From: Octopus bimaculoides
Lineage: Eukaryota
Assembly: GCF_001194135.2 (NCBI RefSeq)
Contig: NC_068998.1
Span: 2,202,433 to 2,266,432 of the forward strand
Direction of reading: 5' to 3'
DNA: 64,000 bases
The notes under the pieces were generated by a model. It was not told where the DNA came from. It ran no database searches and saw only the letters and a list, made by a program, of their open reading frames with translations. A program made the translations under genes and the position numbers. This document shows, piece by piece, positions 2,008 to 64,000 of this stretch; within the stretch, counting starts at the first letter, position 1; the number at the start of each line of letters is the position of its first letter.

Positions 2008-5000
2008 NNNNNNNNNNNNNNNNNNNNNNNNNNNNNNNNNNNNNNNNNNNNNNNNNNNNNNNNNNNNNNNNNNNNNNNNNNNNNNNNNNNNNNNNNNNNN
2101 NNNNNNNNNNNNNNNNNNNNNNNNNNNNNNNNNNNNNNNNNNNNNNNNNNNNNNNNNNNNNNNNNNNNNNNNNNNNNNNNNNNNNNNNNNNNNNNNNNNN
2201 NNNNNNNNNNNNNNNNNNNNNNNNNNNNNNNNNNNNNNNNNNNNNNNNNNNNNNNNNNNNNNNNNNNNNNNNNNNNNNNNNNNNNNNNNNNNNNNNNNNN
2301 NNNNNNNNNNNNNNNNNNNNNNNNNNNNNNNNNNNNNNNNNNNNNNNNNNNNNNNNNNNNNNNNNNNNNNNNNNNNNNNNNNNNNNNNNNNNNNNNNNNN
2401 NNNNNNNNNNNNNNNNNNNNNNNNNNNNNNNNNNNNNNNNNNNNNNNNNNNNNNNNNNNNNNNNNNNNNNNNNNNNNNNNNNNNNNNNNNNNNNNNNNNN
2501 NNNNNNNNNNNNNNNCATCAGTTCTGATCTCTGAAGGCAATATTTTCCCAAAGTACTTCTCTCTATCTTCCCCCACCCCAACTCATCTTTCAACTTCTTC
2601 TATAAAGTAAATTGTTCAATATTTCTATCTCTCTATCCATCTATCTTTGTAGAATTGTATCCATTTTGGGATTAACTCTTCACTTATCTCTATCAATCTC
2701 TACCTGCCTGTCAGTCTAGCTATAAAGCTGTCTATCTGTCTGCTTGTCTATCTATATCTACTTATTTATCTGTCTATCCATTTGCTTATCTATCTTCCTA
2801 TCTATCTATCTACTTTTCTACCTACCTACCTACCTGCCTACCTACCTACCTACCTACCTACCTACCTACCTACCTACCTACCTATCTATCTATCTCCCCC
2901 CTCACTCTCCCCCTCTCTCTTGGTGGAACATCTACCTAAAGGTTATATTCTTGTTTTCTTTCTCAAATATCTTTGTGTATGCTATTGGGCATTTTATCAT
3001 ATAACTTTGGCTGTTAAAGAGCAATAGGTTAAACACTTTTCATTCTCTCTCACTCACTCTCTCTCTCACTCACTCAATCTCTCTCTCTCACTCACTCTCT
3101 CTCTCACTCACTCTCACAAGCTCAATGAAAAGTTTTCTATCTAAAGTTTTATGACTGTCACTGAAGTTGAATCATTATTATTATTATTATTATTATTATT
3201 ACAGCCAAGGCAGAATTATTGACACTGATAACTTAGCGTCAATTCATCTCTTCCACCTGTCCATCTTTGCCTTTCGTCCTTTCTGAATCAATAAAATAAA
3301 GTACAGGCAAGTACTGGGGTCGATATAACCAACTACCGTACTTCTCCAAAACTCCAGGCCTTGTACCTAGAGTACAAAGGAGGACGATGATTACTACTAC
3401 CACCACCTCTAGCCTCGACCATCACTTCATTGTTGGAATACGTCTTCCAAGGCAAGGTGTGGTTGAGGTTGATTTGGTTGCTATTTCTAGCAGATTGAAT
3501 GATCACGTGGGGGCTCCCTCATTGTTGAGGACAATGCCAATGATGATGATGATGATGTTACTTACTGCTGCTGCTGATTCAAAGACAGTGATGAATGTGA
3601 TTATAATGACCACACCGCCCTTCCCCCCACCCCCACAAAGAGATAGTCTTTCATATCTAAGTTATTCTCAGTTATGTTGATTAAGCTGTCATTAGATTAT
3701 TAATGACTCAGGAGTCCAACAACAGTCTGACTCATTAGCAGTCACCTCACACTACCCCCCCCCCCCCNNNNNNNNNNNNNNNNNNNNNNNNCCCCCCACT
3801 AAACTGCTGCTGCGTACCCCTGAACTTATACCACCTCATGCTACTTCTTTACTCTACCTCAGTCTACCCCGCTTACACACTCTATGTCTGACTACCCACC
3901 CCCTACACCCTTCATCCTCACCTTCTCTATTTTCTCCCCCCCCCCTCTCTGCATGGCTCTGTGGTTAGGAAGTTTGTTTCCCAAACTGCGTGATTCTGAG
4001 TTCAGTCCCACTGCACGACACCTCAGGCACGTGTCTTCTACCATGGTCTTGTGTGTGGAATGGATCGATGGAAACTAAAAGAAACCTGTCATGTATGTGT
4101 GTGTGTTTGTCTCCCTGTTGTGACAATTGTAAATGAATCTTCCCTCACCCCATAAGAGTGGTATTCTTTGTTTTTAATTTTTTGTGAAACCATGCTTGGC
4201 TATGGAGGAAATCTTACCTTCATTGCAAATGTGAAGTTGGTGACAGGAAGAGCATCCGCATCAAATTCTGTCCAAACCATCTGAGCAAGAAAAGTAGACA
4301 TTAAAGCAATGACAGTGATGTGTGCACATATGCATATGCTTGCACACACACACACACACACACGCACACACACGCACACATAAATATATATTTCATTATT
4401 GCCCACAAGGGGCTAAACATGGAATTTGAACTCAGAACACGCTAAGCATTTCGCCTGGTCTGCTACCAATTCTTCCAACTCTTTGCTATAAATATATAAA
4501 CCACAAAAAGTCAGGACATATGAGGGAGAAATATATTTGACTGCTTGACATCCTTAGAGTTACAGCTGTTTCACAGCATTCTTCATGGAGTCAGTACGCT
4601 CATATATATATATATATATAGACACATGGCCCTGGGTGCTGGAATTTGTGTTTGCATGCTAGAAAGAAACAGCAGCCTACTCTACCTCCGAATCACATCC
4701 TCTTCTATACTGGCCAATGTAATTGTAGGGACAGAAAAAAAAAAGGGGTTCTGATCAGCTGTCATTCATACATGTACTTGCAGGTCTTCTGGAATAGGGC
4801 TAACCCAGGGTTAAACAACCACCACCACCTCCACCACTAATATCAGACATCTACACCTGTCTGGTATTAGGTATAATGTAATCAGACTTCAATGGTCCCA
4901 CCTGTCTGAACAACTGTGTTTTGGTCAACTACTTTTAAATCTTCCATAAATCCACTTGTGTCGACTGGGGGTCTCTGATAACAGATGTTTAACGAATTGG

Positions 5001-7908: not shown

Positions 7909-8870
7909 TTGGGTCATCCCATAAATAATGTGGTTGGTGGGGTTCAAATGCATGAACTAAAAGTTGGAGGGGACAGGATAAACTACCTGTATCAACCTAC
8001 TATAAAAGTGGGTAATAATTTTACCTTCTACTTATTCTTAGTGCAAGTTTTGAAGAGTGCAGTTCTATTTTAACAGTTATTTTTTCAAAGCTATGGAAAG
8101 TGCGAGGAATATTAACACAGTATACGAAAGTCAGACAATAAGTGTAAGCGAGTGTTAACGGTGGTTCCAGAAATTCCAAGCTGGAAATTATAGTCTAGAA
8201 GACAAGCTTTGTCCTGGAAGATCTGTAGAGCTCAATAAGGATATTCTGCAAACCTTGGTGGAACAAAATCCCATCGTAACTGTTGTGGAACTAGCAGAGA
8301 GGCTTGGATTTGGTCAGTCAACCATTCATCGACACCTGCGAGCCATCAGAAAAGTCAGTAAATTGGGTCAATGGGTTCCTCACAAACTTTCCGAGTCTAA
8401 TCATGCGCAGAGAGGGAATGTGAGCTCTTCTTTGCTGTGATGTCTCACAAATGAACCTTTATTGGACTGAATAGTGACTGGTGACAAGAAATGGGTCCTC
8501 TATGAAACTGTCAATCACTGAAGACAGTGGGTAGGGAAAGGAGAAACACCAGCACCCCAGGCTAAAGAAGGTCTTCACTTACGTAAAGTGTCGTTATGTT
8601 TGGTCGGATATGAAAAGTTTAGTCCACTTTGAACTTTTAAACCGAAACCAAAAGATAACTAAGGAGATCTACTTTGAGCAGCTTGATCGGCTTAAGCCAG
8701 CGCTAGAAGAAAAATGACCATCTTTGGTTTCAAGATGAAAGGTGTTCTTCCATCAGGATAATGCTTGGCCACATATAGTGAGGATGATATTCCAAATGCT
8801 GGAGCAGTCTGAATGGGAAACGATGCTCCACCCACCATATTCGCTGGACATTGCCCCATCTGCATTCATC
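7909..8870 (+). mobile_element. Degraded mariner (Tc1/mariner) transposon
   Basis: TA followed by a TIR-like start ttgggtcatcccata; fragments GQWVPHKL, IVTGD(K)KWVLY, FHQDNAWPH, HPPYSLDIAPS; many stops. Confidence 0.92.
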
Positions 8871-9836
8871 ACAAATAAGATGCAGCTTCTTTCGTTTTTA
8901 ATCCTTTTTTTTTTTTTGTTTTTGTTTGAAATCCTTTCCTTCCAACATACAACGAAATCAATGGGAATAACCATTATCATCATTATGGTTTGAAAATTAC
9001 AAGAATTTCTTTCATCTTTGAAAAACATGCATGAAAATGTACAAAGATTAACAAAGATGTTGTTGTTACCGTCTCCTCTGTGTGGTCTGCTGAATGTCTA
9101 TTAATAGTCATTAAGCTAAAATAGTGACTTTACAGTTCCAACAGAACCAGGAATTGGTCTGTTATTATTTCATGAATGGTGGAGGAGGACTGTTGGGGAG
9201 CGGGGAAGATATTTGGAATAATAATTCCCATCTGTTTGAGAAAACTGGACCTGTGTCTCCGTAATGGGGTGGCTGTGTATTGGGTGGGTNNNNNNNNNNT
9301 GGGTGTGGTGGAGTATGGGAGGTGTAAGGGTGTGAGATAGATGATGCATGTATGGGGGTGTGGGGGTGGAGGAGGATGTCAGAATGTAAGAGGGTGTGAA
9401 GGGTGTGTTTGAAAGAACATTTATACTACCCCCACCTCTACTAGACCTGAAAGTCCTCTAGAGGAGATTACTCATAACCATCCTTGTTGATGCCGAAGAA
9501 TTGTTCTTAGATTGTTGCCTAATGACTCTTTCCATTATGAGCACAAAATGCCTGAGATTTGGATGGGAGGCAGGGTGGGAGAGATGCAATCGACTTCATG
9601 GACCCCAGTGCTCAACTAGTGTTTATTTTATTGATCTTGGAAGCGTGAAAGACTAAGTTAACCTTGGCATAATTTCAACTCAGAAATCTCAAAACCTAAT
9701 CAGTTTGTGCCAGTCACGAGACCAAACATCTCCAAAAGTTTCTTCTGAATCTATGCAGCGGTTCTTGAGATATCTTGTCCATGGACAAACAAACAAACAT
9801 GACTGAAAACAATACCTCTGCCTTCGCTACGGTGGA

Positions 9837-9870
<34 letters not shown>

Positions 9871-10018
9871 TTTAGGAAATGCAGAACTCTGTGTAAAATA
9901 ATACTTTATTTTTACTGTTATTGATGTATATCATTCTTTCACAGAATTATTTCTAAATTATTTTTTCTTTTTCTGTATTTCTTTCTTTCCTTTTCTCCCT
10001 TCCCCTCCCTCAAACTCT

Positions 10019-10067
<49 letters not shown>

Positions 10068-11293
10068 CTGCTAGCTTCCTAAAACATCTTCCTATCATAA
10101 CATCCCATGATGTCAGTTGTGAAACTGGCATTAGCTATTACATAAACCAGTGGAAAGAAGATGATGGGGAGGGGGCACCTCACCCACCAACCCTACATTA
10201 CAACAAACCCGTACAGTTAGGCAACATTACTCGTTAGCAGATTTCGTTAAATAGACCAGTGCCAAAATGGTTGGTTCACTTTGATTGGCATAAGTCATTT
10301 TCTTTTTGTTTTTTTATTTGACAGATTCATAATTAATTCCAAACTTGTTGCTATATTTGGTGATTTAATTAAGTAAATGGTGACGAGACAGCTGTCAGGG
10401 TTGAAAGCAAACTGGATTAATGGCTGAAGTAGAAGACATTGGGTGTCCAGTGAAAATCTCTTGAAATGGCCAAAGGACAGCGGAAGGGAGCACGAAATAA
10501 CACATGAGAAGGCATGGCTGTGTGGTAAGAGGTTTGCTTCCCAACCACATGGCCCTGGGTTCAGTCCCACTGCATGGCACCTGGGCAAGTAACTTCTACT
10601 ATAGCTTTGGGCTATATATCATTCATCATCTTCAGCAGCATCATACTCTAATGCCTGTTTTCCATGCTGGCTAGTTGAGGAGCTGTCCAAACTCCACTTG
10701 TCTGTTTTGGTATGGTTTCTAGGACTGGATGCCCTCCTCCTTACCATTCTGGCAGCATCATTGGCACACAGGGTGAAATGCTTAGCAGTGTTTTGCCCGT
10801 CGCCACATTCTGAGTTCAAATTCTGCCAAGGTCAACTTCACCTTTCATTCTTTCAGTGGGTGGGGTCGATAAAATAAATACCAGTTGTGTACTGGGGTCG
10901 ATGTGATCGACTCATCCCTTCCCCCAAAATTGCTGCCCTTGTGGCAAAATTTGAAACCAATGTTATTATTATTATTATTATTATTATTATCATTATCATC
11001 ATCATTATTATTATTAACAAATACTTTTTTTCTTAATTGTAGGAACCAGTTATAATTTGTCGAAAACTGCCATTGACCAAGGAAAAGAAAAAAGATAAAC
11101 AGAGATAAAAGGGACAAAATTAAAACCAGAAATAAATAAAGACGAATAATAATAATTAGGATTTACCAAATTTAAATTGAATCACAAGAAAAAGGAAAAC
11201 AAAGTTCGAAAGAGCAACGTCTTTCATTTGATTTTGTTTCTAAGTTGAGATTGCCAACAGATTGTGATGTCATTTCGGTGAAGTTGGTTCAAG

Positions 11294-56572: not shown

Positions 56573-56790
56573 CGGCTGCGAGCTGGCAGAAACGTTGGCA
56601 CGCCGGGCGAAATGCTTAGCGGTATTTCGTCTGTCTTTACGTTCTGAGTTCATATTCCGCCAAGGTCGACTTTGCCTTTCATCCTTTCGGGGTTGATGAA
56701 TTATTAAGTACCAGTTGCGTACTAGGGCCGATCTAATCGACTGGCGCCCTCCCCCAAAATTTCGGGCCTTGTGCCTTGAGTAGAAAAAAA
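56573..56790 (+). mobile_element. tRNA-derived SINE (Meta-domain-like octopus family), CpG-intact copy
   Basis: gagctggcagaaacgttggcacgccgggcgaaatgcttagcgg..gcctttcatcctttcggggttgat..aagtaccagtt. Many other copies, e.g. 10770-10965, 25545-25770, 31975-32150, 38430-38620, 43630-43800, 45405-45605, 50430-50720, 53290-53410. Confidence 0.9.
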
Positions 56791-59004
56791 AGGAATTATT
56801 CTTTAGTTATTATAATTGCTACTAGAGTGTTAGCCGTCATGTGAGGGGTAGCTTTGCAAGTTTACCTTTTTACCGAAAGCGCGTGGCTTAATACTCAGTG
56901 ACTTCTTGATAAGATCATTTGGACAGATGAGGCNNNNNNNNNNNNNNNNNNNNNNNNNNNNNNNNNNNNNNNNNNNNNNNNNNNNNNNNNNNNNNNNNNN
57001 NNNNNNNNNNNNNNNNNNNNNNNNNNNNNNNNNNNNNNNNNNNNNNNNNNNNNNNNNNNNNNNNNNNNNNNNNNNNNNNNNNNNNNNNNNNNNNNNNNNN
57101 NNNNNNNNNNNNNNNNNNNNNNNNNNNNNNNNNNNNNNNNNNNNNNNNNNNNNNNNNNNNNNNNNNNNNNNNNNNNNNNNNNNNNNNNNNNNNNNNNNNN
57201 NNNNNNNNNNNNNNNNNNNNNNNNNNNNNNNNNNNNNNNNNNNNNNNNNNNNNNNNNNNNNNNNNNNNNNNNNNNNNNNNNNNNNNNNNNNNNNNNNNNN
57301 NNNNNNNNNNNNNNNNNNNNNNNNNNNNNNNNNNNNNNNNNNNNNNNNNNNNNNNNNNNNNNNNNNNNNNNNNNNNNNNNNNNNNNNNNNNNNNNNNNNN
57401 NNNNNNNNGTGGTGGTGGTGGGGGGGTCGTCGTCATCGTCGTGGTGGTCGTGGTACTGTTGCAATGGTGGTGATGATGGTGATGATTGTACTAATGATGG
57501 TGGTAGTCGTGTAGGTGGGGGTGGGGATGGCGGTGGTAGAATTAGCAAACAGTAGTGGCGATAATGTGAAGTAATGCATGACCATGGTCAAGTTTGTCGA
57601 TTGTCCACTCGGTATCAGTCAGTCCAAAGCAGTGATAGCTGACAAGAAGTTGATGGACATTCTGTAAACGCCAAACGAATTCATGGAGTCAACGGTATTT
57701 TATATTTTTGTTTCCAGATTCCGCAATGTCACTGCCAGCTTCCTTTTCTGAATTTGGCGGACTCCATTTGTCTGCTTTACCACCTTCTATTTTCGTCGCA
57801 ATTTCCTCATCTTTTGCTTGTTCCACATTTTTATTTATTCATTAATTAATCTCCACCTTGTTTTACGGTTTTGCAATAAGTATTTTCCAGTTTCTCGATC
57901 GCTTATTTTTCCCTTTATCTGTCTCTCAACCAACACTATGCATCTGCTATTCAGTATGTCTACAAGCCTACGTGTCTTTTGACCAGCATGGCTATCTGTC
58001 GTCTGCTTATCACCTATTTATCGTTAGTCCTATCTCTATCTGTTTTCTACCTGTAGTTTGCGTATTTGTCTAATACCTGTTAATAATTTATTTGTCCGCC
58101 CCTTGTCTAGTTATATATTTGTCAACCCATCCCTTGTTTAACGCCTGTTTGCCATTCCATTGTCTATGTATAATACGTTTATCCTTTGTGTGCATGTGTG
58201 TGCATGTGTGTGCGTGTGTTTGTGTGTATCGAAGGTAAAAAAGAGAGAAAATAGAAAGTTTCTGACAATGCGGGTAGTTTTTTTTATAAAATTTTTATAT
58301 TTCTGACGCAAACGCCCACCATCAAAAGAAAAACAGTCTGAGAAATGTCCATATATATATATGTTCATTTTGTCCGTTTGTCATCTATTTGTCTATCTAT
58401 TGTCGATCATCTTTCTTTCTGTCCTATATTACTACTGGCTTGATTATTATGTTTGTTGTTTTCAGTCTCATTGTCAATTTATCATCACCTTGCCCATCGT
58501 CGGCCCTTCTTCTATATATCCATGGCTCTATTTTGTCATCTTTTTGTCTGTCTAATGCAGTGGTTCTCAACCGGGGGTCAAGATTTTGTTGTTAGAAATT
58601 ATTTGCAATATATTGCTTATGCTTCTACAAAACACGTTTTAATAATTTTCTTAAATACAATTCCTAATGATATTAAATAATAAAAATGCAATGAGATTTT
58701 TTTAAAACATGGAACGGGTGTGAGGGTCCTTCCGGGTAAAATAAGAATCAAAAGACTCCATAGGTAGAAAAATAGTAGAGAAACACTAGTCTAAAGTCTA
58801 CTTAATATATATTTATTCATTGCTAATGTATCGAATTTTTTTTCAGACTCCTGTCTATTTATCGTATGCCTATCTTTCACCTATTTGTCTACAATCGTCT
58901 ACCTTATGATGTCTCCATTACCTATCATTTAACAGTTCGACTGGTCATAGGCTATCGATCATGTTCGTCTGATGACTGTCTATCATATATTTGTGTGTGC
59001 AATG

Positions 59005-59054
<50 letters not shown>

Positions 59055-59188
59055 AACGGAGTCGCAAATGCAAAATATCAGTTAGTTCTAGAGCACACAA
59101 TGTTCCTGAAGGTCAGCAATGGTCTTCGTCGGTCACGAGTGGAGGCCATCATGTATGTATGTATATATGTATGCGAATGTGTGTAAAT

Positions 59189-59222
<34 letters not shown>

Positions 59223-61165
59223 CTGTCTATGTAAAGCTTTAAAAAATAAACTGGTGTATCTATCTCTATTCACTGCGTAATATTGCGTTTTGGTCAACAG
59301 ATTATTTTTAGACAACCTGTTGGAAGCCCCCGCCCTCCTCCTCCTCCATCCCTGGCATTAAAAGCATCAATGTCAACATCCTTACTGCTTGTCTTTCAAT
59401 ACGTCTTGAAATGACGTTAAGTTATGTCACAAATTGGTATCTTGTTCATCATACCGTATCGACCAATGTAAATCGATATCAAGTCACTGTTCTACCACAC
59501 CTTCGAGATCGCGATTCAACGAAAGAGCCTTTGCTTTGTCATTCGGTCTCTTTAACTCTTTAACTCTTTTATTTCAGTGATTTACACTGCGGCCATGCTG
59601 GAGCACCGCCTTTAGTCGAACTTATTCTTTGTAAGCCTAGTACTTATTCTATCGTTCTTCTTTTACCGAACTGCTAAGTTTCGGGGACGTAAATACACCA
59701 GCATCGGATGGCAAGCGATAGTTGGGGGACAAACACAGACACACAAACATATACATATATATATATATATGAAGGGCTTCTTTTCAGTTTCCGCCTACGA
59801 AATTCACTCACAAGACTTTGGTCAGCCCGAGGCTATAGCAGAAGACGCTCGCCCAACGTGTCGCGCAGTGGGACTGAACCCAGAACCATGAGGTTGGTAA
59901 GCAAACTACTTACCACACAGCTACTCTTAGCAACCAAACTTGCTACAAATGACGCCTTACCGTTTTAAATATGTATAGGCATGACTGTGTGGTTTCAGGT
60001 TCAGTCCTACTGCACAGCCTCCTTAGGCAAGTGTCTTTTATAATAGTCCCGGGTCGAGTAATGCCTTATGAGTAAATTTGGCAGATGGAAACTGTGTGGA
60101 AGTCTATCGTGTATATGTCTGTGTATTTTTGTGTCCCCCATCCCGCTTGACAACCGCTGTTGGTTTGTTTATGTTTCCGTAACTCAGCTGTTCCGTATAA
60201 GACACCGATAGAATAAGTACTAACTAGAATTTTTTTTTTCTAAAAAAAAAAAAGAAAGAAACAGAAGTACTGCAGTCAATGATTTCGACTGAAACCCTTC
60301 AAGGCGGTGCTCCAGCATGGCCGCAGTCTAATGACCGAAACTAGTAAAAGATAAATATAAAAAGACATCTCGAACAGCAAGGCTCTGGGTTTATTCCTCG
60401 TGGGGGAGATGTAGGACCGTCATGTCGGAATGTAGATCAGTTCTTGAGACTAAACAACATCCGCAACAACAACAAACTAAACAACAACCACAACAATAAC
60501 AGTGTAAACAACAACAACAACAACGTTCAACGATTTCAGCCATTACAACCCCCCATTACAACCTCATTTTCACGCTTCACTGAACGGCGTCATTTTGGCT
60601 TCTTGACCTTTTCGTTCGTGCTGTCTTATATGTCTTGTAGCCTTCCGTTTTCCGAGTTGCTGCTGCTGTTGCTATACTCACTGACTATTTTCGGCACCTG
60701 TAGTTACTGTCGCAGATAGTGTTATTATTAGCGCTACTATCCGTGCTGTTGTTGTTATTGCAGTACGCTGAAAATAAATAAATAAACAAATAAATAAATA
60801 GATAAAAGGCCCCGGCAGAACAATTTGTTAATATGAATACCAACGTGACAGCAGATATTTTGATAATACACCTATCCCTCCTTCAAGATAAATTTAAAAA
60901 GTAACAAAGAATGTTATTTATGACGACAAAGACACGGCGCGACGCACAGTCATATACCAGATGGTGTCAAAAAGTTCCCAAACTAGTTATGTTTAATAAT
61001 AATAAAAAAAATAGAAACATTATTATTTCTAAATCTCTGAAAGAGAGATATTCAGTAACAGTCCTTTAAAGTAAAAACTATTTGCCAACATAATGTGTCT
61101 GCCCTGGATAAGACGATTGTTACTGTTGTTTAGCCCCAGGAAACATCGTTTCCAGCTGGCTATTT

Positions 61166-62165
61166 ACTTAAGTTTTATCACCATCTCCTTCGAAATAGTC
61201 TCCTTGCGCAGCGATACACGGGTCCCAGCGTTCCTGCCACTTTTGGAATCCGGCCTGGAAGTCGTTTTCCATAAGCGAGTATAGGACCTTCTAGGATTCG
61301 CTCTGGATCCCGACAACAATGTTAAAACGGCAACCTTTCAGCTTCATTTTCATGTTGGGGGAAGAGATGGAAGTCCACAGGTGATAAATCTGACAAATAG
61401 GGCAGGTGCTGAAGCAATACCATGTTGTTTTTGAGGAGAACTTGGTGACAGAGTGCCTTCTCGTCGTGAAGGATCCAATTCTTTGCGCTCCACAAATCCG
61501 GTCGCTTTCGCCGAATGTCCTCCTCCAAACGCTACAAAACGTCACATTAGATCACTCTATTGACGGCCTGGCCCGGGGTGGGGTCGGCAGAATTCTCGAT
61601 GCACAATATCGCGGATGTCGGAAAAAGAAGAAAAGAAAACGCGGAGCATGCTTTTGATTGAGTTGCAGCTCTGTTGTGCTTTCTTCGGTCGTGGAGATGA
61701 ACGCCTCTTCCATTGTGACGACTGCTGCTTCATCTCAGGGTCGTACTCGTAGACCCAACTCCTGTCACCTGGGATGATGGTCGACATGAAGGAGGAGGTC
61801 ATCAGCGATACGCTGACGGAGATCTTGACAGACTTCGACGTTCTTACTGTTCAATGGTCAGTAGGCGAGGGACAAACTTAGAAGTGACACGCCGCATGTT
61901 CAATCCAGACGTGAGGATTGCCTGCACGGACCCATACGACAGGCCAAAAATATCAGCAATGTCGTTGATTGTCCCCTCCGACGATCCTCATACACAAGCT
62001 GATGCATTTTCTCCACATTTCCGGGGGTGACGCTCATGGCAGGTCTTCCAGACCGATCATCGTCTTCCAGACCGATCATCGTCTTCCAGGGACGTTCTTC
62101 CGCTTTTGAAGCGCCCGTGCGACCCAAATTTCCGAAAATACATGTTAGCAACGTTTTCATGGTGA
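61166..62165 (-). mobile_element. Degraded mariner transposase, second subfamily
   Basis: Fragments IPGDRSWVYEYDPEMKQQSSQWK, WILHDEKA, HLPYLSDLSPVDFHLFP and C-terminal DFQAGFQKWQERWDPCIAAQGDYFEGD. TIR-like taccagatggtgtcaaaaagttcc near 60955. Confidence 0.92.
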
Positions 62166-62329
62166 TCCAAAATTAGTGAAATCCAATGTGACAAGGCTGG
62201 CCCCTTTGAATTACAGGTACAAGTCATTTTTGCCAGCCGAATGGAGCAATGTGATCTAAAGCGTCTTGCTCAAGGACACAACGCATCGCCAGGAATTGAA
62301 CTCAAGACCTTACGATCGTGAGCCGTAAA

Positions 62330-62590
62330 AGAATTCTTGCAGCTCCAAGCATTGCTGATTCTTGTAGGCGTTCTACCTTCACACTTGCACCGATCTTTTT
62401 CAGCCATGCTGGTAGTTGAGTTCTGATACTTCCAAGAGCACCAATTACTTTGGTATCACGTCTTCTCTCTTCATTGACCACAACCTTCGTATTTCCCACT
62501 TCAAATCGTCATAGTTGTTTTATTTTTTCTTCTTCTTTCTCTTTGATCCTGTTGTCATCAGGATATGCTATATCAATTATCATGCATGTT
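62330..62590 (-). mobile_element. R4/Dong-type remnant
   Basis: Reverse strand reads EEEKIK.YDDLKWEIRRLWSM...VIGALGSIRTQLPAWLKKIGASVKVERLQESAMLGAARIL; adjacent to a (TTA)n run. Confidence 0.78.
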
Positions 62591-62623
62591 CTTTCTTTTT
62601 TATTCACCACCACAACAACAACA

Positions 62624-62625
<2 letters not shown>

Positions 62626-62712
<87 letters not shown>
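62626..62712. repeat. (TTA)n microsatellite directly upstream of a splice-acceptor-like site at 62728
   Basis: Read directly. Confidence 0.95.
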
Positions 62713-62713
<1 letters not shown>

Positions 62714-63088
62714 TGTTATTCTTGGCAGAATGTAACCAAAATGGTGTCTGAAGAAAACCAAAACGATGAAGTACTTTAGATGGAAATCTGTCGAAGTGTT
62801 CCAAAATGATAAAATGTGACGAAATGTAAAGAAGAAAACATGAAAGAACAGCCATCGAAACGCAATAAATCGTAACGAAGAAGATCCAAACCAAGAACGA
62901 AGGAAAGAAAACGTAACCAATAAGGACACACAAAAAAAAAAAAAAAAAAACCAATATAGAATAAAGTAATTACAAGAAAAATTAAAGCAACAAAACAAAT
63001 TAAACTATAAAAATGATATACAAAAAGAGTTTAAGAAAACATGTAAAACTATAAAATAGTAAAGATTGATAAAAGAGAATTATGTACA

Positions 63089-64000
63089 ATGAATATAGGA
63101 AGTTTTTTATATTTTATGTTATGGATCGTTTTTGCTCTGTGTAGTGTTGCTCTAAATATTTTCAATATTGACTGGCACAAGACAAGCATACCACAAGGTA
63201 TTATTCTTGTCATTGTGCTTGGAATCCTGCAAGGTTCTGTTTACGAATTTCCGGTGCAGACGATTGCTACATTGATTGTCGGCGGCAACAGAAGGAAAAA
63301 CCCAACGGCTGAAGGCGACAATTTAACGCTCATTCTCAACTATAACTTGTTAGCAGTTACAGTTGATGATATTGAAGAATGCTTCCAGACAATGTTTCAA
63401 GCATTCATGGGCAATTTATGTTTCAATGTATCTGCTGTTCTTGTCAGTGCAACTTCGAAAGAAGATCTCATATCATGTGAGTTAGAATGCCGTGATAAAT
63501 ACCGGAAGTTAATATACGATGAACTTTTCAAAGAAGGTGTCTGTTTCGCTAATGGCTACTATGACGATATCAATCAAGACCGTTTTAAGAACGTATGGAT
63601 GTATTTCCAATACTGTCCAGGGGATATTTTCATCCATCAACACCTTGATTCAATATGTGATCGATTTGCACGAGAATTTATGGTAATTCATCGCACCAGT
63701 AAAGTTTTACGTAAATGTGGACAATATCAAGATCTAATGTTGCTATCTGAGGGAGAATCTTTTGCTTACACATATACTGACATTGAATATTATGGAAAGA
63801 TGGCCCGTCCTTATAACCAGCCCACCTTTTACTATTCATCTGACGTGCAAAATATATTTAACCGGCGATTTGATTACACCTTAGTATTGGATGCCGATAC
63901 AGGGGTGCCGGATGGAACGGTAGAAAAACTTCTCGGAATAGCTGCAGCAAACCCAGAGAAAGGGATCATCCAACCATCTATAAAACTAAGTCGCGATGTA
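63089..64000 (+). CDS. Membrane GT2 glycosyltransferase, OpgH/MdoH-like; 5' part, truncated by window end
   Basis: 304 codons without a stop. First ATG after an in-frame TAA at 63044. Two hydrophobic segments (FLYFMLWIVFALCSVALNIF; GIILVIVLGILQGSV). Motifs FMVIHRTSKVLRKCGQYQDL, FDYTLVLDADTGV (DxD at 63890-63898) and ANPEKGIIQPS correspond to E. coli OpgH [33 protein letters not shown] and [11 protein letters not shown] (recalled from memory, not searched). Confidence 0.85.
   Translation, partial: MNIGSFLYFMLWIVFALCSVALNIFNIDWHKTSIPQGIILVIVLGILQGSVYEFPVQTIATLIVGGNRRKNPTAEGDNLTLILNYNLLAVTVDDIEECFQTMFQAFMGNLCFNVSAVLVSATSKEDLISCELECRDKYRKLIYDELFKEGVCFANGYYDDINQDRFKNVWMYFQYCPGDIFIHQHLDSICDRFAREFMVIHRTSKVLRKCGQYQDLMLLSEGESFAYTYTDIEYYGKMARPYNQPTFYYSSDVQNIFNRRFDYTLVLDADTGVPDGTVEKLLGIAAANPEKGIIQPSIKLSRDV

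Follow-up and report, generated by a model that had tools for sequence, protein, structure and literature searches.

An intronless gene of Octopus bimaculoides, probably coding for a GT2-type synthase of a patchily distributed eukaryotic family

The stretch of Octopus bimaculoides DNA analysed here (64,000 nucleotides, RefSeq assembly GCF_001194135.2, contig NC_068998.1, positions 2,202,433 to 2,266,432 of the forward strand; hereafter, the window) belongs to the chromosome scaffold CM046618.1 and ends with an open reading frame (ORF) located at positions 63089-64000 (+), annotated as "uncharacterized protein LOC106871375". The ORF starts with an ATG and runs for 304 codons with no stop, far beyond chance expectation. 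According to our data, it probably forms the 5' portion of a functional host gene with a single exon, one copy of a convergent pair, coding for a synthase of the glycosyltransferase family 2 (GT2) type that belongs to a eukaryotic family with a patchy distribution. A preliminary description of the same DNA, based on the sequence of the window only, had proposed a bacterial-type gene similar to opgH (mdoH), embedded in the octopus genome and possibly acquired horizontally. OpgH is the GT2 enzyme making the linear beta-1,2-glucan backbone of the osmoregulated periplasmic glucans. The analysis revealed that the gene truly is part of the host genome and that its similarity to OpgH is genuine and distant, and it spoke against a recent arrival from bacteria.

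Reconstruction of the gene and its conservation in cephalopods

Twelve runs of Ns (10-905 bp) interrupt window positions 1-57408; the assembly of the region is thus fragmented, which advises caution with the gene models located there. The preliminary description had reported no gap between positions 57409 and 64000, and indeed no N run occurs in this interval; however, it is not merely the edge of the window that interrupts the ORF, since a 6,184-bp N gap (L001, 10913-17096) begins at the base directly after position 64000. Two models are available for LOC106871375, one of 346 amino acids (aa) from NCBI (P0002) and one of 342 aa from UniProt (A0A0L8IE07; P0001). Both diverge just past ...KLSRD, that is, exactly at the N gap, and splice over to small downstream exons. 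They are gap artefacts.

The remaining part of the gene was recognized on the unplaced scaffold LGKD02005792.1 (L002), which is 4,112 bp long and contains no Ns. This scaffold overlaps window positions 63711-64000 (290 nt, one mismatch), and its positions 1-1382 carry the frame via ...SRDVNDTLYMRLEAM..., VLSHDTFEAA and RERRWNRGE and then, past several hydrophobic helices, to a stop codon. Moreover, the tail that it encodes is 94% identical to the C-terminal tail of the convergent gene of Octopus vulgaris described below, on the basis of which L002 was assigned to the gene of the window; this 4.1-kb scaffold can therefore be placed in the gap that follows position 64000. The merged ORF consists of 667 codons, 363 of which lie on L002, and is intronless, with neither stops nor frameshifts. 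Hence, the absence of introns noticed in the visible part of the gene, where translation of the window ORF returned the expected 304 uninterrupted codons, extends to the whole of it. The SHD and RxxRW motifs and the C-terminal transmembrane (TM) helices, which the preliminary description could not see, are present as well, SHDTFEA being located at aa 368 and RERRW at aa 401 of the merged ORF, both outside the window.

Beyond the gap lies a second copy in the opposite orientation (L001, 17097-17992, minus strand), of which only the 5' part, from aa 1 to about aa 298, is assembled; together, the gap and this fragment occupy the bases from 1 to about 7,080 past window position 64000. The two copies share 89% of their amino acids and 93.6% of their nucleotides, and the gap cuts both of them at about the same codon, probably because the assembler could not resolve their near-identical 3' halves. 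The possibility that the inverted copy might be an assembly duplicate was considered and rejected: it is a diverged paralogue, whose N-terminus (MGRQIYFYF...) resembles that of the O. vulgaris protein P0003 (MGKQIYLYF...).

The gap-free O. vulgaris chromosome OX597831.1 harbors, at L004 10001-11965, the counterpart of this paralogue. Its protein P0003 is annotated with 410 aa because of a spurious intron, whereas the locus actually contains an uninterrupted ORF of 654 codons; about 10 kb downstream a convergent gene is found, with a product of 667 aa. Thus, the same convergent gene pair exists in O. bimaculoides and in O. vulgaris, and the annotation is mistaken in at least two octopus genomes, where models of 342/346 aa and of 410 aa stand in place of ORFs of 667 and 654 codons. 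In Argonauta hians the orthologue is a single-exon gene of 669 codons, and a second copy lies on the same contig. The ratios of non-synonymous to synonymous substitutions (dN/dS, Nei-Gojobori) were 0.21 between the O. bimaculoides and O. vulgaris orthologues, 0.07 between Octopus and Argonauta (with dS saturated and dN only 0.11) and 0.39 between the paralogues. The intact merged ORF, the cephalopod orthologues and the low dN/dS values indicate that the gene is real, host-encoded, intact and under purifying selection, and the conserved synteny of the gene pair that its inheritance is vertical at least within cephalopods.

Two less favorable readings of the locus have to be weighed against these data. 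According to the first one, the gene would be truncated or decaying, yielding only a protein of 342/346 aa without the catalytic half, or would be a pseudogene, as might be suspected from the fact that both database models end soon after ...KLSRD. This is very improbable and was rejected, in that the short models splice across the gap, the frame stays open on L002 past SHD, RxxRW and the TM helices as far as the stop, the O. vulgaris and Argonauta ORFs are uninterrupted and dN/dS is well under 1. According to the second one, the ORF would be microbial DNA or the outcome of a misjoin. The region is indeed ridden with gaps, the ORF abuts one of 6.2 kb and has its 3' part on an unplaced scaffold, and an inverted partial copy stands across the gap; nevertheless, the convergent pair is found in the gap-free O. 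vulgaris chromosome, Argonauta has its own single-exon orthologue, the inverted copy is a diverged paralogue rather than a duplicate, the base composition is host-like and a host interspersed repeat is common to the window and L002. A contaminant or a misassembly is, therefore, extremely improbable, and the synteny in three cephalopods led us to reject it.

The interspersed repeat just mentioned is about 210 bp long; it occurs at window positions 56574-56787 and twice on L002, downstream of the ORF (1718-1920 and 3009-3218), with 85-88% identity, and is consistent with a host element of the short interspersed nuclear element (SINE) type.

Distribution of the family and its relationship with bacterial synthases

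The best matches of the window ORF are animal proteins (E-values from 1e-206 to 1e-54, identity 46-89%). In the collection of named proteins, a profile of the family retrieved 154 sequences, contributed by numerous bivalve, gastropod and cephalopod species along with three hemichordates (Saccoglossus, Ptychodera and Glandiceps); among these named matches, no animal phylum other than molluscs and hemichordates is represented. Whether homologues were already annotated in other invertebrates had been left open in the preliminary description: the members from Haliotis rufescens and Saccostrea cucullata already bear the automatic NCBI name "glucans biosynthesis glucosyltransferase H-like", and comparable names are in use in UniRef, so that the naming of some mollusc members as OpgH-like is already in the databases. 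These "H-like" proteins, including that of Saccoglossus kowalevskii (LOC102807443), share motifs and architecture with the octopus protein and 45-60% identity over the full length. Several species have tandem arrays of family genes, as in Sinanodonta and Dreissena, and some bivalve members reach about 800-900 aa, with extra regions that match no Pfam family; in particular, Pfam revealed no accessory domain in the members of about 900 aa.

An exhaustive HMMER search of 1.84 billion representative sequences yielded 111 sequences at E<=1e-30 and 500 at E<=1e-3. Outside animals, more distant members were found in the dinoflagellates Biecheleria cincta, Noctiluca scintillans, Abedinium folium and Cladocopium goreaui, in the ichthyosporean Chromosphaera perkinsii and in the stramenopile alga Tribonema minus. 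The motifs CGQYQDL, LDxDT, QP, GKG, SHDTFEA and RERRWNxGE are invariant in the family, YNLLA and S-A-T are nearly so, and the merged octopus ORF holds YNLLA together with all the invariant motifs. None of the 185,579 bacterial and archaeal species genomes searched encodes the family motif patterns.

A neighbor-joining (NJ) tree was built on a core of 171 columns, and it must be regarded as a rough distance tree. In this tree, cephalopods (100% bootstrap) and hemichordates (93%) fall inside one animal cluster, outside which there are unnamed and dinoflagellate sequences, then the ichthyosporean with other dinoflagellates, and then Tribonema; the branch leading to the E. coli OpgH is very long. 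The tree does not discriminate between vertical descent and an ancient transfer into animals, and an ancient non-animal origin of the whole family is possible. What these data largely refute is a recent horizontal transfer, that is, the acquisition and domestication of a bacterial opgH in the octopus or cephalopod lineage, as had been proposed at first. Such an event might be suggested by the absence of introns, by the OpgH models being the sole NCBIfam matches and by the precedent of the tunicate cellulose synthase, a processive animal GT2 of bacterial origin; it becomes very improbable in view of the animal best matches in bivalves, gastropods, cephalopods and hemichordates, the position of cephalopods within the animal cluster of the NJ tree, far from OpgH, the lack of the family motifs in all the prokaryotic species genomes surveyed, the base composition matching that of the host and the low identity with the E. 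coli enzyme, amounting to only 29% over 164 aa.

As for the relationship with OpgH, the five motifs listed for the octopus ORF are present in the order given (aa 80, 112, 197, 263 and 287), and the five E. coli strings with which they had been paired are exact in the OpgH of strain K-12 (residues 244, 278, 312, 341 and 365). Two of the pairings, those of the DxD and ANPxxGIIQ motifs, are statistically supported by hhalign and BLASTP, and the other three were reproduced by MAFFT. The comparison of the family profile with E. coli OpgH by hhalign gave a probability of 97.4% (E 1.2e-11) over 155 columns, from DxD to RxxRW, and BLASTP gave the above identity with an E-value of 7e-12. The only NCBIfam families matched are the MdoH/OpgH equivalogs (PRK05454), with scores well below the cut-offs: 14.5 bits at best for the window ORF versus 419, and no more than 43 bits for the longest homologues versus 328-1131. 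The designation as OpgH-like holds, therefore, in the sense of a distant relative; as an OpgH proper, the protein fails the equivalog cut-offs and has lost the first Asp of the GT2 domain. As for Pfam, the window fragment gave only a noise match, and the GT2 models remained below the gathering threshold for longer family members (P0017, 13.7 versus 23.3 bits; P0020, 16.3 versus 27), the dinoflagellate P0119 being the only one to pass it (30 versus 27).

A search of the PDB sequences with phmmer and the window fragment returned noise only; Cgs was reached by the family profile alone, which retrieved only the cyclic glucan synthase Cgs/NdvB (8RF0 and 8RF9, E 1.2e-5), with DAD, QP, GKG, SHD and RxxRW in register. 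The structure was examined on an AlphaFold2 (AF2) model of the Argonauta orthologue, which is 83% identical to the window ORF (pLDDT 85.3, pTM 0.84). Foldseek placed the three Cgs entries 8RF0, 8RF9 and 8RFE first (E 1.9e-15, TMq 0.59, about 690 columns). Next came BcsA, hyaluronan synthases, plant CesA, Fks1 and chitin synthases; all of these matches had probability 1.00, and the E-values for BcsA, hyaluronan synthases, CesA and chitin synthases ranged from 1e-9 to 1e-4. Furthermore, when the profile was built from those family members that diverge most, it led to Cgs-type proteins of bacteria in which PF10091 and PF06165 are present. The same profile also finds a small prokaryotic group of stand-alone glycosyltransferases (GTs) of 620-631 aa, comparable in length to the octopus protein; one of them, on a gene-dense contig of 197 kb, shares 4 nt with an overlapping PF10091 gene, as if a Cgs had been split. 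These GTs (P0269, P0273 and P0326-P0329) are the nearest prokaryote-encoded relatives of the family, with which they have KxGxYQDL, DxD, GKG, SHD and RW in common; unlike the eukaryotic members, they keep the first Asp (LSDT), reside in a gene-dense operon with the PF10091 partner and show about 20% identity with the protist members (alignment A3). This prokaryotic group appears uncharacterised. As judged from these searches, all the detectable bacterial relatives seem to be beta-1,2-glucan synthases, and Cgs is at least as close to the octopus family as OpgH.

Both enzymes share important traits with the octopus protein and differ from it in others. Cgs has a homologous GT domain and an integrated TM region, with a nearly whole-length structural match (identity in the structural alignment about 13-14%), but it is a protein of about 2,800 aa including a PF10091-type cyclase and a GH94 phosphorylase domain, whereas the octopus protein ends after the TM region, at 667 aa, and according to Pfam possesses neither of the two domains. 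In addition, Cgs keeps the first Asp (VSDW), which in the octopus is an Ala. OpgH exhibits the same order of motifs and, like the octopus protein, is a stand-alone, membrane-integrated GT with flanking TM helices; LDADT and ANPEKGIIQP align with the LDADS and ANPxxGIIQ-type motifs of OpgH, and SHDTFEA and RERRW with its SHDFVEA and RDRRW. However, E. coli OpgH carries an N-terminal cytoplasmic region of about 190 aa (its first strongly hydrophobic segment is at aa 194, while the first TM segment of the octopus protein is at aa 6), and its first Asp (LSDS) and the Glu of "CNE" are replaced in the octopus and in all animal members (VSATS and YNLL). The setting is different as well, being a eukaryotic membrane instead of the periplasm, with no opgG seen next to the gene, and the octopus protein bears two insertions relative to OpgH, which correspond to those previously noticed and measure about 51 and 37 aa by motif positions. 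BcsA, hyaluronan synthases, CesA and chitin synthases share the fold class, the channel-forming architecture and the D,D,Q/RxxRW logic, but their structural scores are lower than those of Cgs and they show no significant sequence similarity; the octopus protein, in turn, has no PilZ, myosin or other accessory domains. The loss of the first Asp and of the acidic residue of "CNE", the absence of the OpgH N-terminal region and that of the Cgs cyclase and GH94 domains indicate that the octopus protein is an orthologue of neither OpgH nor Cgs, but rather a distinct eukaryotic branch of their superfamily.

Some members of the family have an unusual organization. A single ORF of a 10,053-nt Logan contig (P0150, 3301 aa) includes three complete synthase units in tandem, and P0151 and P0152 include two each; they resemble polyproteins and are possibly dinoflagellate transcripts. 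Moreover, a Glyco_hydro_cc domain (PF11790) occupies aa 549-623 of P0097 from Batillaria attramentaria, a second canonical Glycos_transf_2 domain aa 42-178 of P0178 and an FKBP_C domain aa 112-202 of P0228; these may be either real fusions or merged gene models.

Predicted activity, product and significance

The protein begins with two TM helices, which precede a cytosolic catalytic domain of the GT-A fold bearing the two family-specific insertions; amphipathic helices at the membrane interface come next, and some six TM helices make up the C-terminal part. DxD, KxGQ, QP, GKG, SHD and RxxRW are conserved in the family. The GT2 signature is D,D,D,Q/RxxRW. By analogy with its better known relatives, the octopus protein is most likely a processive glycan synthase-translocase. 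In this case, a nucleotide sugar would be bound on the cytosolic face at the DxD/KxGQ site, as in Cgs, OpgH, BcsA and hyaluronan synthase; sugars would be added processively to the growing chain, with the Asp of SHD acting as the base and RxxRW holding the acceptor; and the polymer would be threaded through the TM channel of the enzyme itself to the cell surface or to a secretory compartment. As for the product, the fact that the only detectable bacterial relatives all make beta-1,2-glucan makes a beta-glucan, perhaps beta-1,2-linked, the likeliest candidate.

The glycosidic linkage is not readable from the sequence of a GT2. It is, hence, a substantial possibility, although the lesser one, that the family represents the same fold with another chemistry, i.e., a processive synthase that is active but makes something other than a beta-1,2-glucan (with another linkage or sugar, or a lipid- or protein-linked glycan), or a protein with a non-catalytic role. 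Following the MAFFT alignment, all animal members have an Ala in place of the first GT2 Asp, whereas in protists the residue is Val or Gly; the Asp is kept only in the prokaryotic group that bridges the family to Cgs, as is the acid of "NE"; this loss, the two family-specific insertions, the missing Cgs cyclase and GH94 domains and the absence of an OpgG-type partner next to the gene would all fit a different product. On the other hand, the bacterial relatives that could be detected are all beta-1,2-glucan synthases by type, and a non-catalytic role is at odds with DxD, SHD and RxxRW being invariant under strong purifying selection.

Several points weigh against a functional GT2-type synthase as read here. 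The join between the window and L002 is deduced from the overlap of 290 nt with one mismatch and from the O. vulgaris tail, and not from a read spanning the gap. The octopus protein stays under the Pfam thresholds for both Glyco_trans_2_3 and Glycos_transf_2; its similarity to OpgH covers only about 160 residues at 29% identity, reaching about 40 bits versus an equivalog cut-off of at least 328; and the structural model was built from the Argonauta orthologue, 83% identical, and not from the octopus protein itself. In the whole eukaryotic family the first GT2 Asp (Ala121) and the "NE" acid (YNLL) are replaced, and the donor may therefore involve a sugar or nucleotide other than UDP-glucose, or the binding may be rearranged. 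Lastly, our search of the literature found no expression data, biochemistry or published study on any family member.

The few well-known processive polysaccharide synthases of animals are chitin synthase, hyaluronan synthase and the cellulose synthase of tunicates. Molluscs and hemichordates would add a fourth family, which is conserved, under selective constraint and often expanded in tandem; this would suggest that a glycan of animals has so far escaped recognition, with mucus, egg coats, the shell or cuticle matrix and interactions with microbes as candidate places. To our knowledge, beta-1,2-glucan is currently described only from bacteria. On a more speculative level, we may envisage that molluscs, hemichordates and some marine protists make a polysaccharide that has yet to be described, either extracellular or luminal and perhaps a beta-1,2-glucan, by means of a dedicated synthase-translocase family descended from a prokaryotic enzyme of the Cgs/OpgH type, the patchy distribution being due to ancient transfer among marine eukaryotes and not to simple vertical descent; as a whole, this scenario is rather unlikely at present. 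In any case, the family lends itself to testing whether genes were transferred between eukaryotes of the sea in ancient times.

We found no paper on an OpgH-like enzyme from animals or other eukaryotes, and in the main text of a compendium of metazoan horizontal gene transfer neither octopus nor glucan is mentioned. According to a review that covers bacterial synthases only (PMC11842490), beta-1,2-glucans are rare in nature. The interest lies in the family, a conserved, divergent and uncharacterised animal variant of the beta-1,2-glucan synthase type, whose deep origin is possibly non-vertical.

Features of the window ORF and its surroundings

The coordinates of the features are reported in Table 1. 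The two N-terminal hydrophobic helices of the preliminary description were recovered from the hydropathy profile and are also supported by the helices 3-28 and 36-66 in the AF2 model of the Argonauta orthologue. Similarly, the reading of the first nucleotide-binding motif as YNL instead of xNE was reproduced by MAFFT, which aligns "CNE" of OpgH with "YNLL". The motif RKCGQYQDL is presumably equivalent to the KAGN motif of BcsA (K-x-G-N in processive GT2 enzymes).

Table 1. Position of the features of the octopus gene within the window (positions of the window) and of the prokaryotic gene pair with a PF10091 partner (positions of its own contig).
Feature	Position	Strand	Basis or comment
5' 304 codons of the intronless 667-codon gene LOC106871375 ("copy A")	63089..64000	+	Overlap with LGKD02005792.1
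Two N-terminal TM helices, aa 6-24 and 33-56	63104..63256	+	Kyte-Doolittle; AF2 model of the Argonauta orthologue
First GT-A beta-strand and "LNYNLLA"	63326..63358	+	MAFFT versus OpgH "LIMPICNE"; Leu replaces the acidic residue
Second beta-strand "VLVSATS", Ala121 at the position of the first GT2 Asp	63437..63457	+	Alignment to OpgH "ILSDS" and Cgs "LVSDW"
"RKCGQYQDL", family-invariant	63710..63736	+	MAFFT versus OpgH; predicted nucleotide-sugar-binding counterpart of K-x-G-N
DxD (D268-A-D270 in FDYTLVLDADT), invariant	63890..63898	+	Predicted metal/diphosphate site; aligned to the DAD of OpgH and Cgs
"ANPEKGIIQPS" with invariant Q-P	63947..63979	+	Aligned to the OpgH counterpart and to Cgs "GLLQP"
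Prokaryotic GT and PF10091 "glycoamylase" gene	L006 (JGI metagenome Ga0272441_10000087), 8001-9896 and 9893-11218		

The GC content of the ORF is 0.383 (0.349 at third codon positions), compared to 0.396 in the flank and 0.373 in the whole window, in agreement with the AT-richness, like that of the host, previously attributed to it. No other coding ORF was found within about 5.7 kb upstream of the gene, and downstream there are the gap and then the paralogue. An OpgG-type partner was not seen beside the gene, no genome-wide search for OpgG homologues having been made.

A repeat search of positions 57409-64000 returned nothing beyond pairs driven by microsatellites. The mariner reported among the neighbours of the gene is weakly supported: the degenerate remains of a mariner-type transposase are located some 1.2 kb before the start of the ORF, at 61560-61850 (-), with a Pfam Transposase_1 match below the threshold (E 0.0022), and the neighbouring frames span 61294-62172 (-). 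The (TTA)n neighbour was located as a long microsatellite at about 62625-62712 which, together with an A-run at 62930-62952, precedes the start codon by about 380 and 140 bp, respectively.

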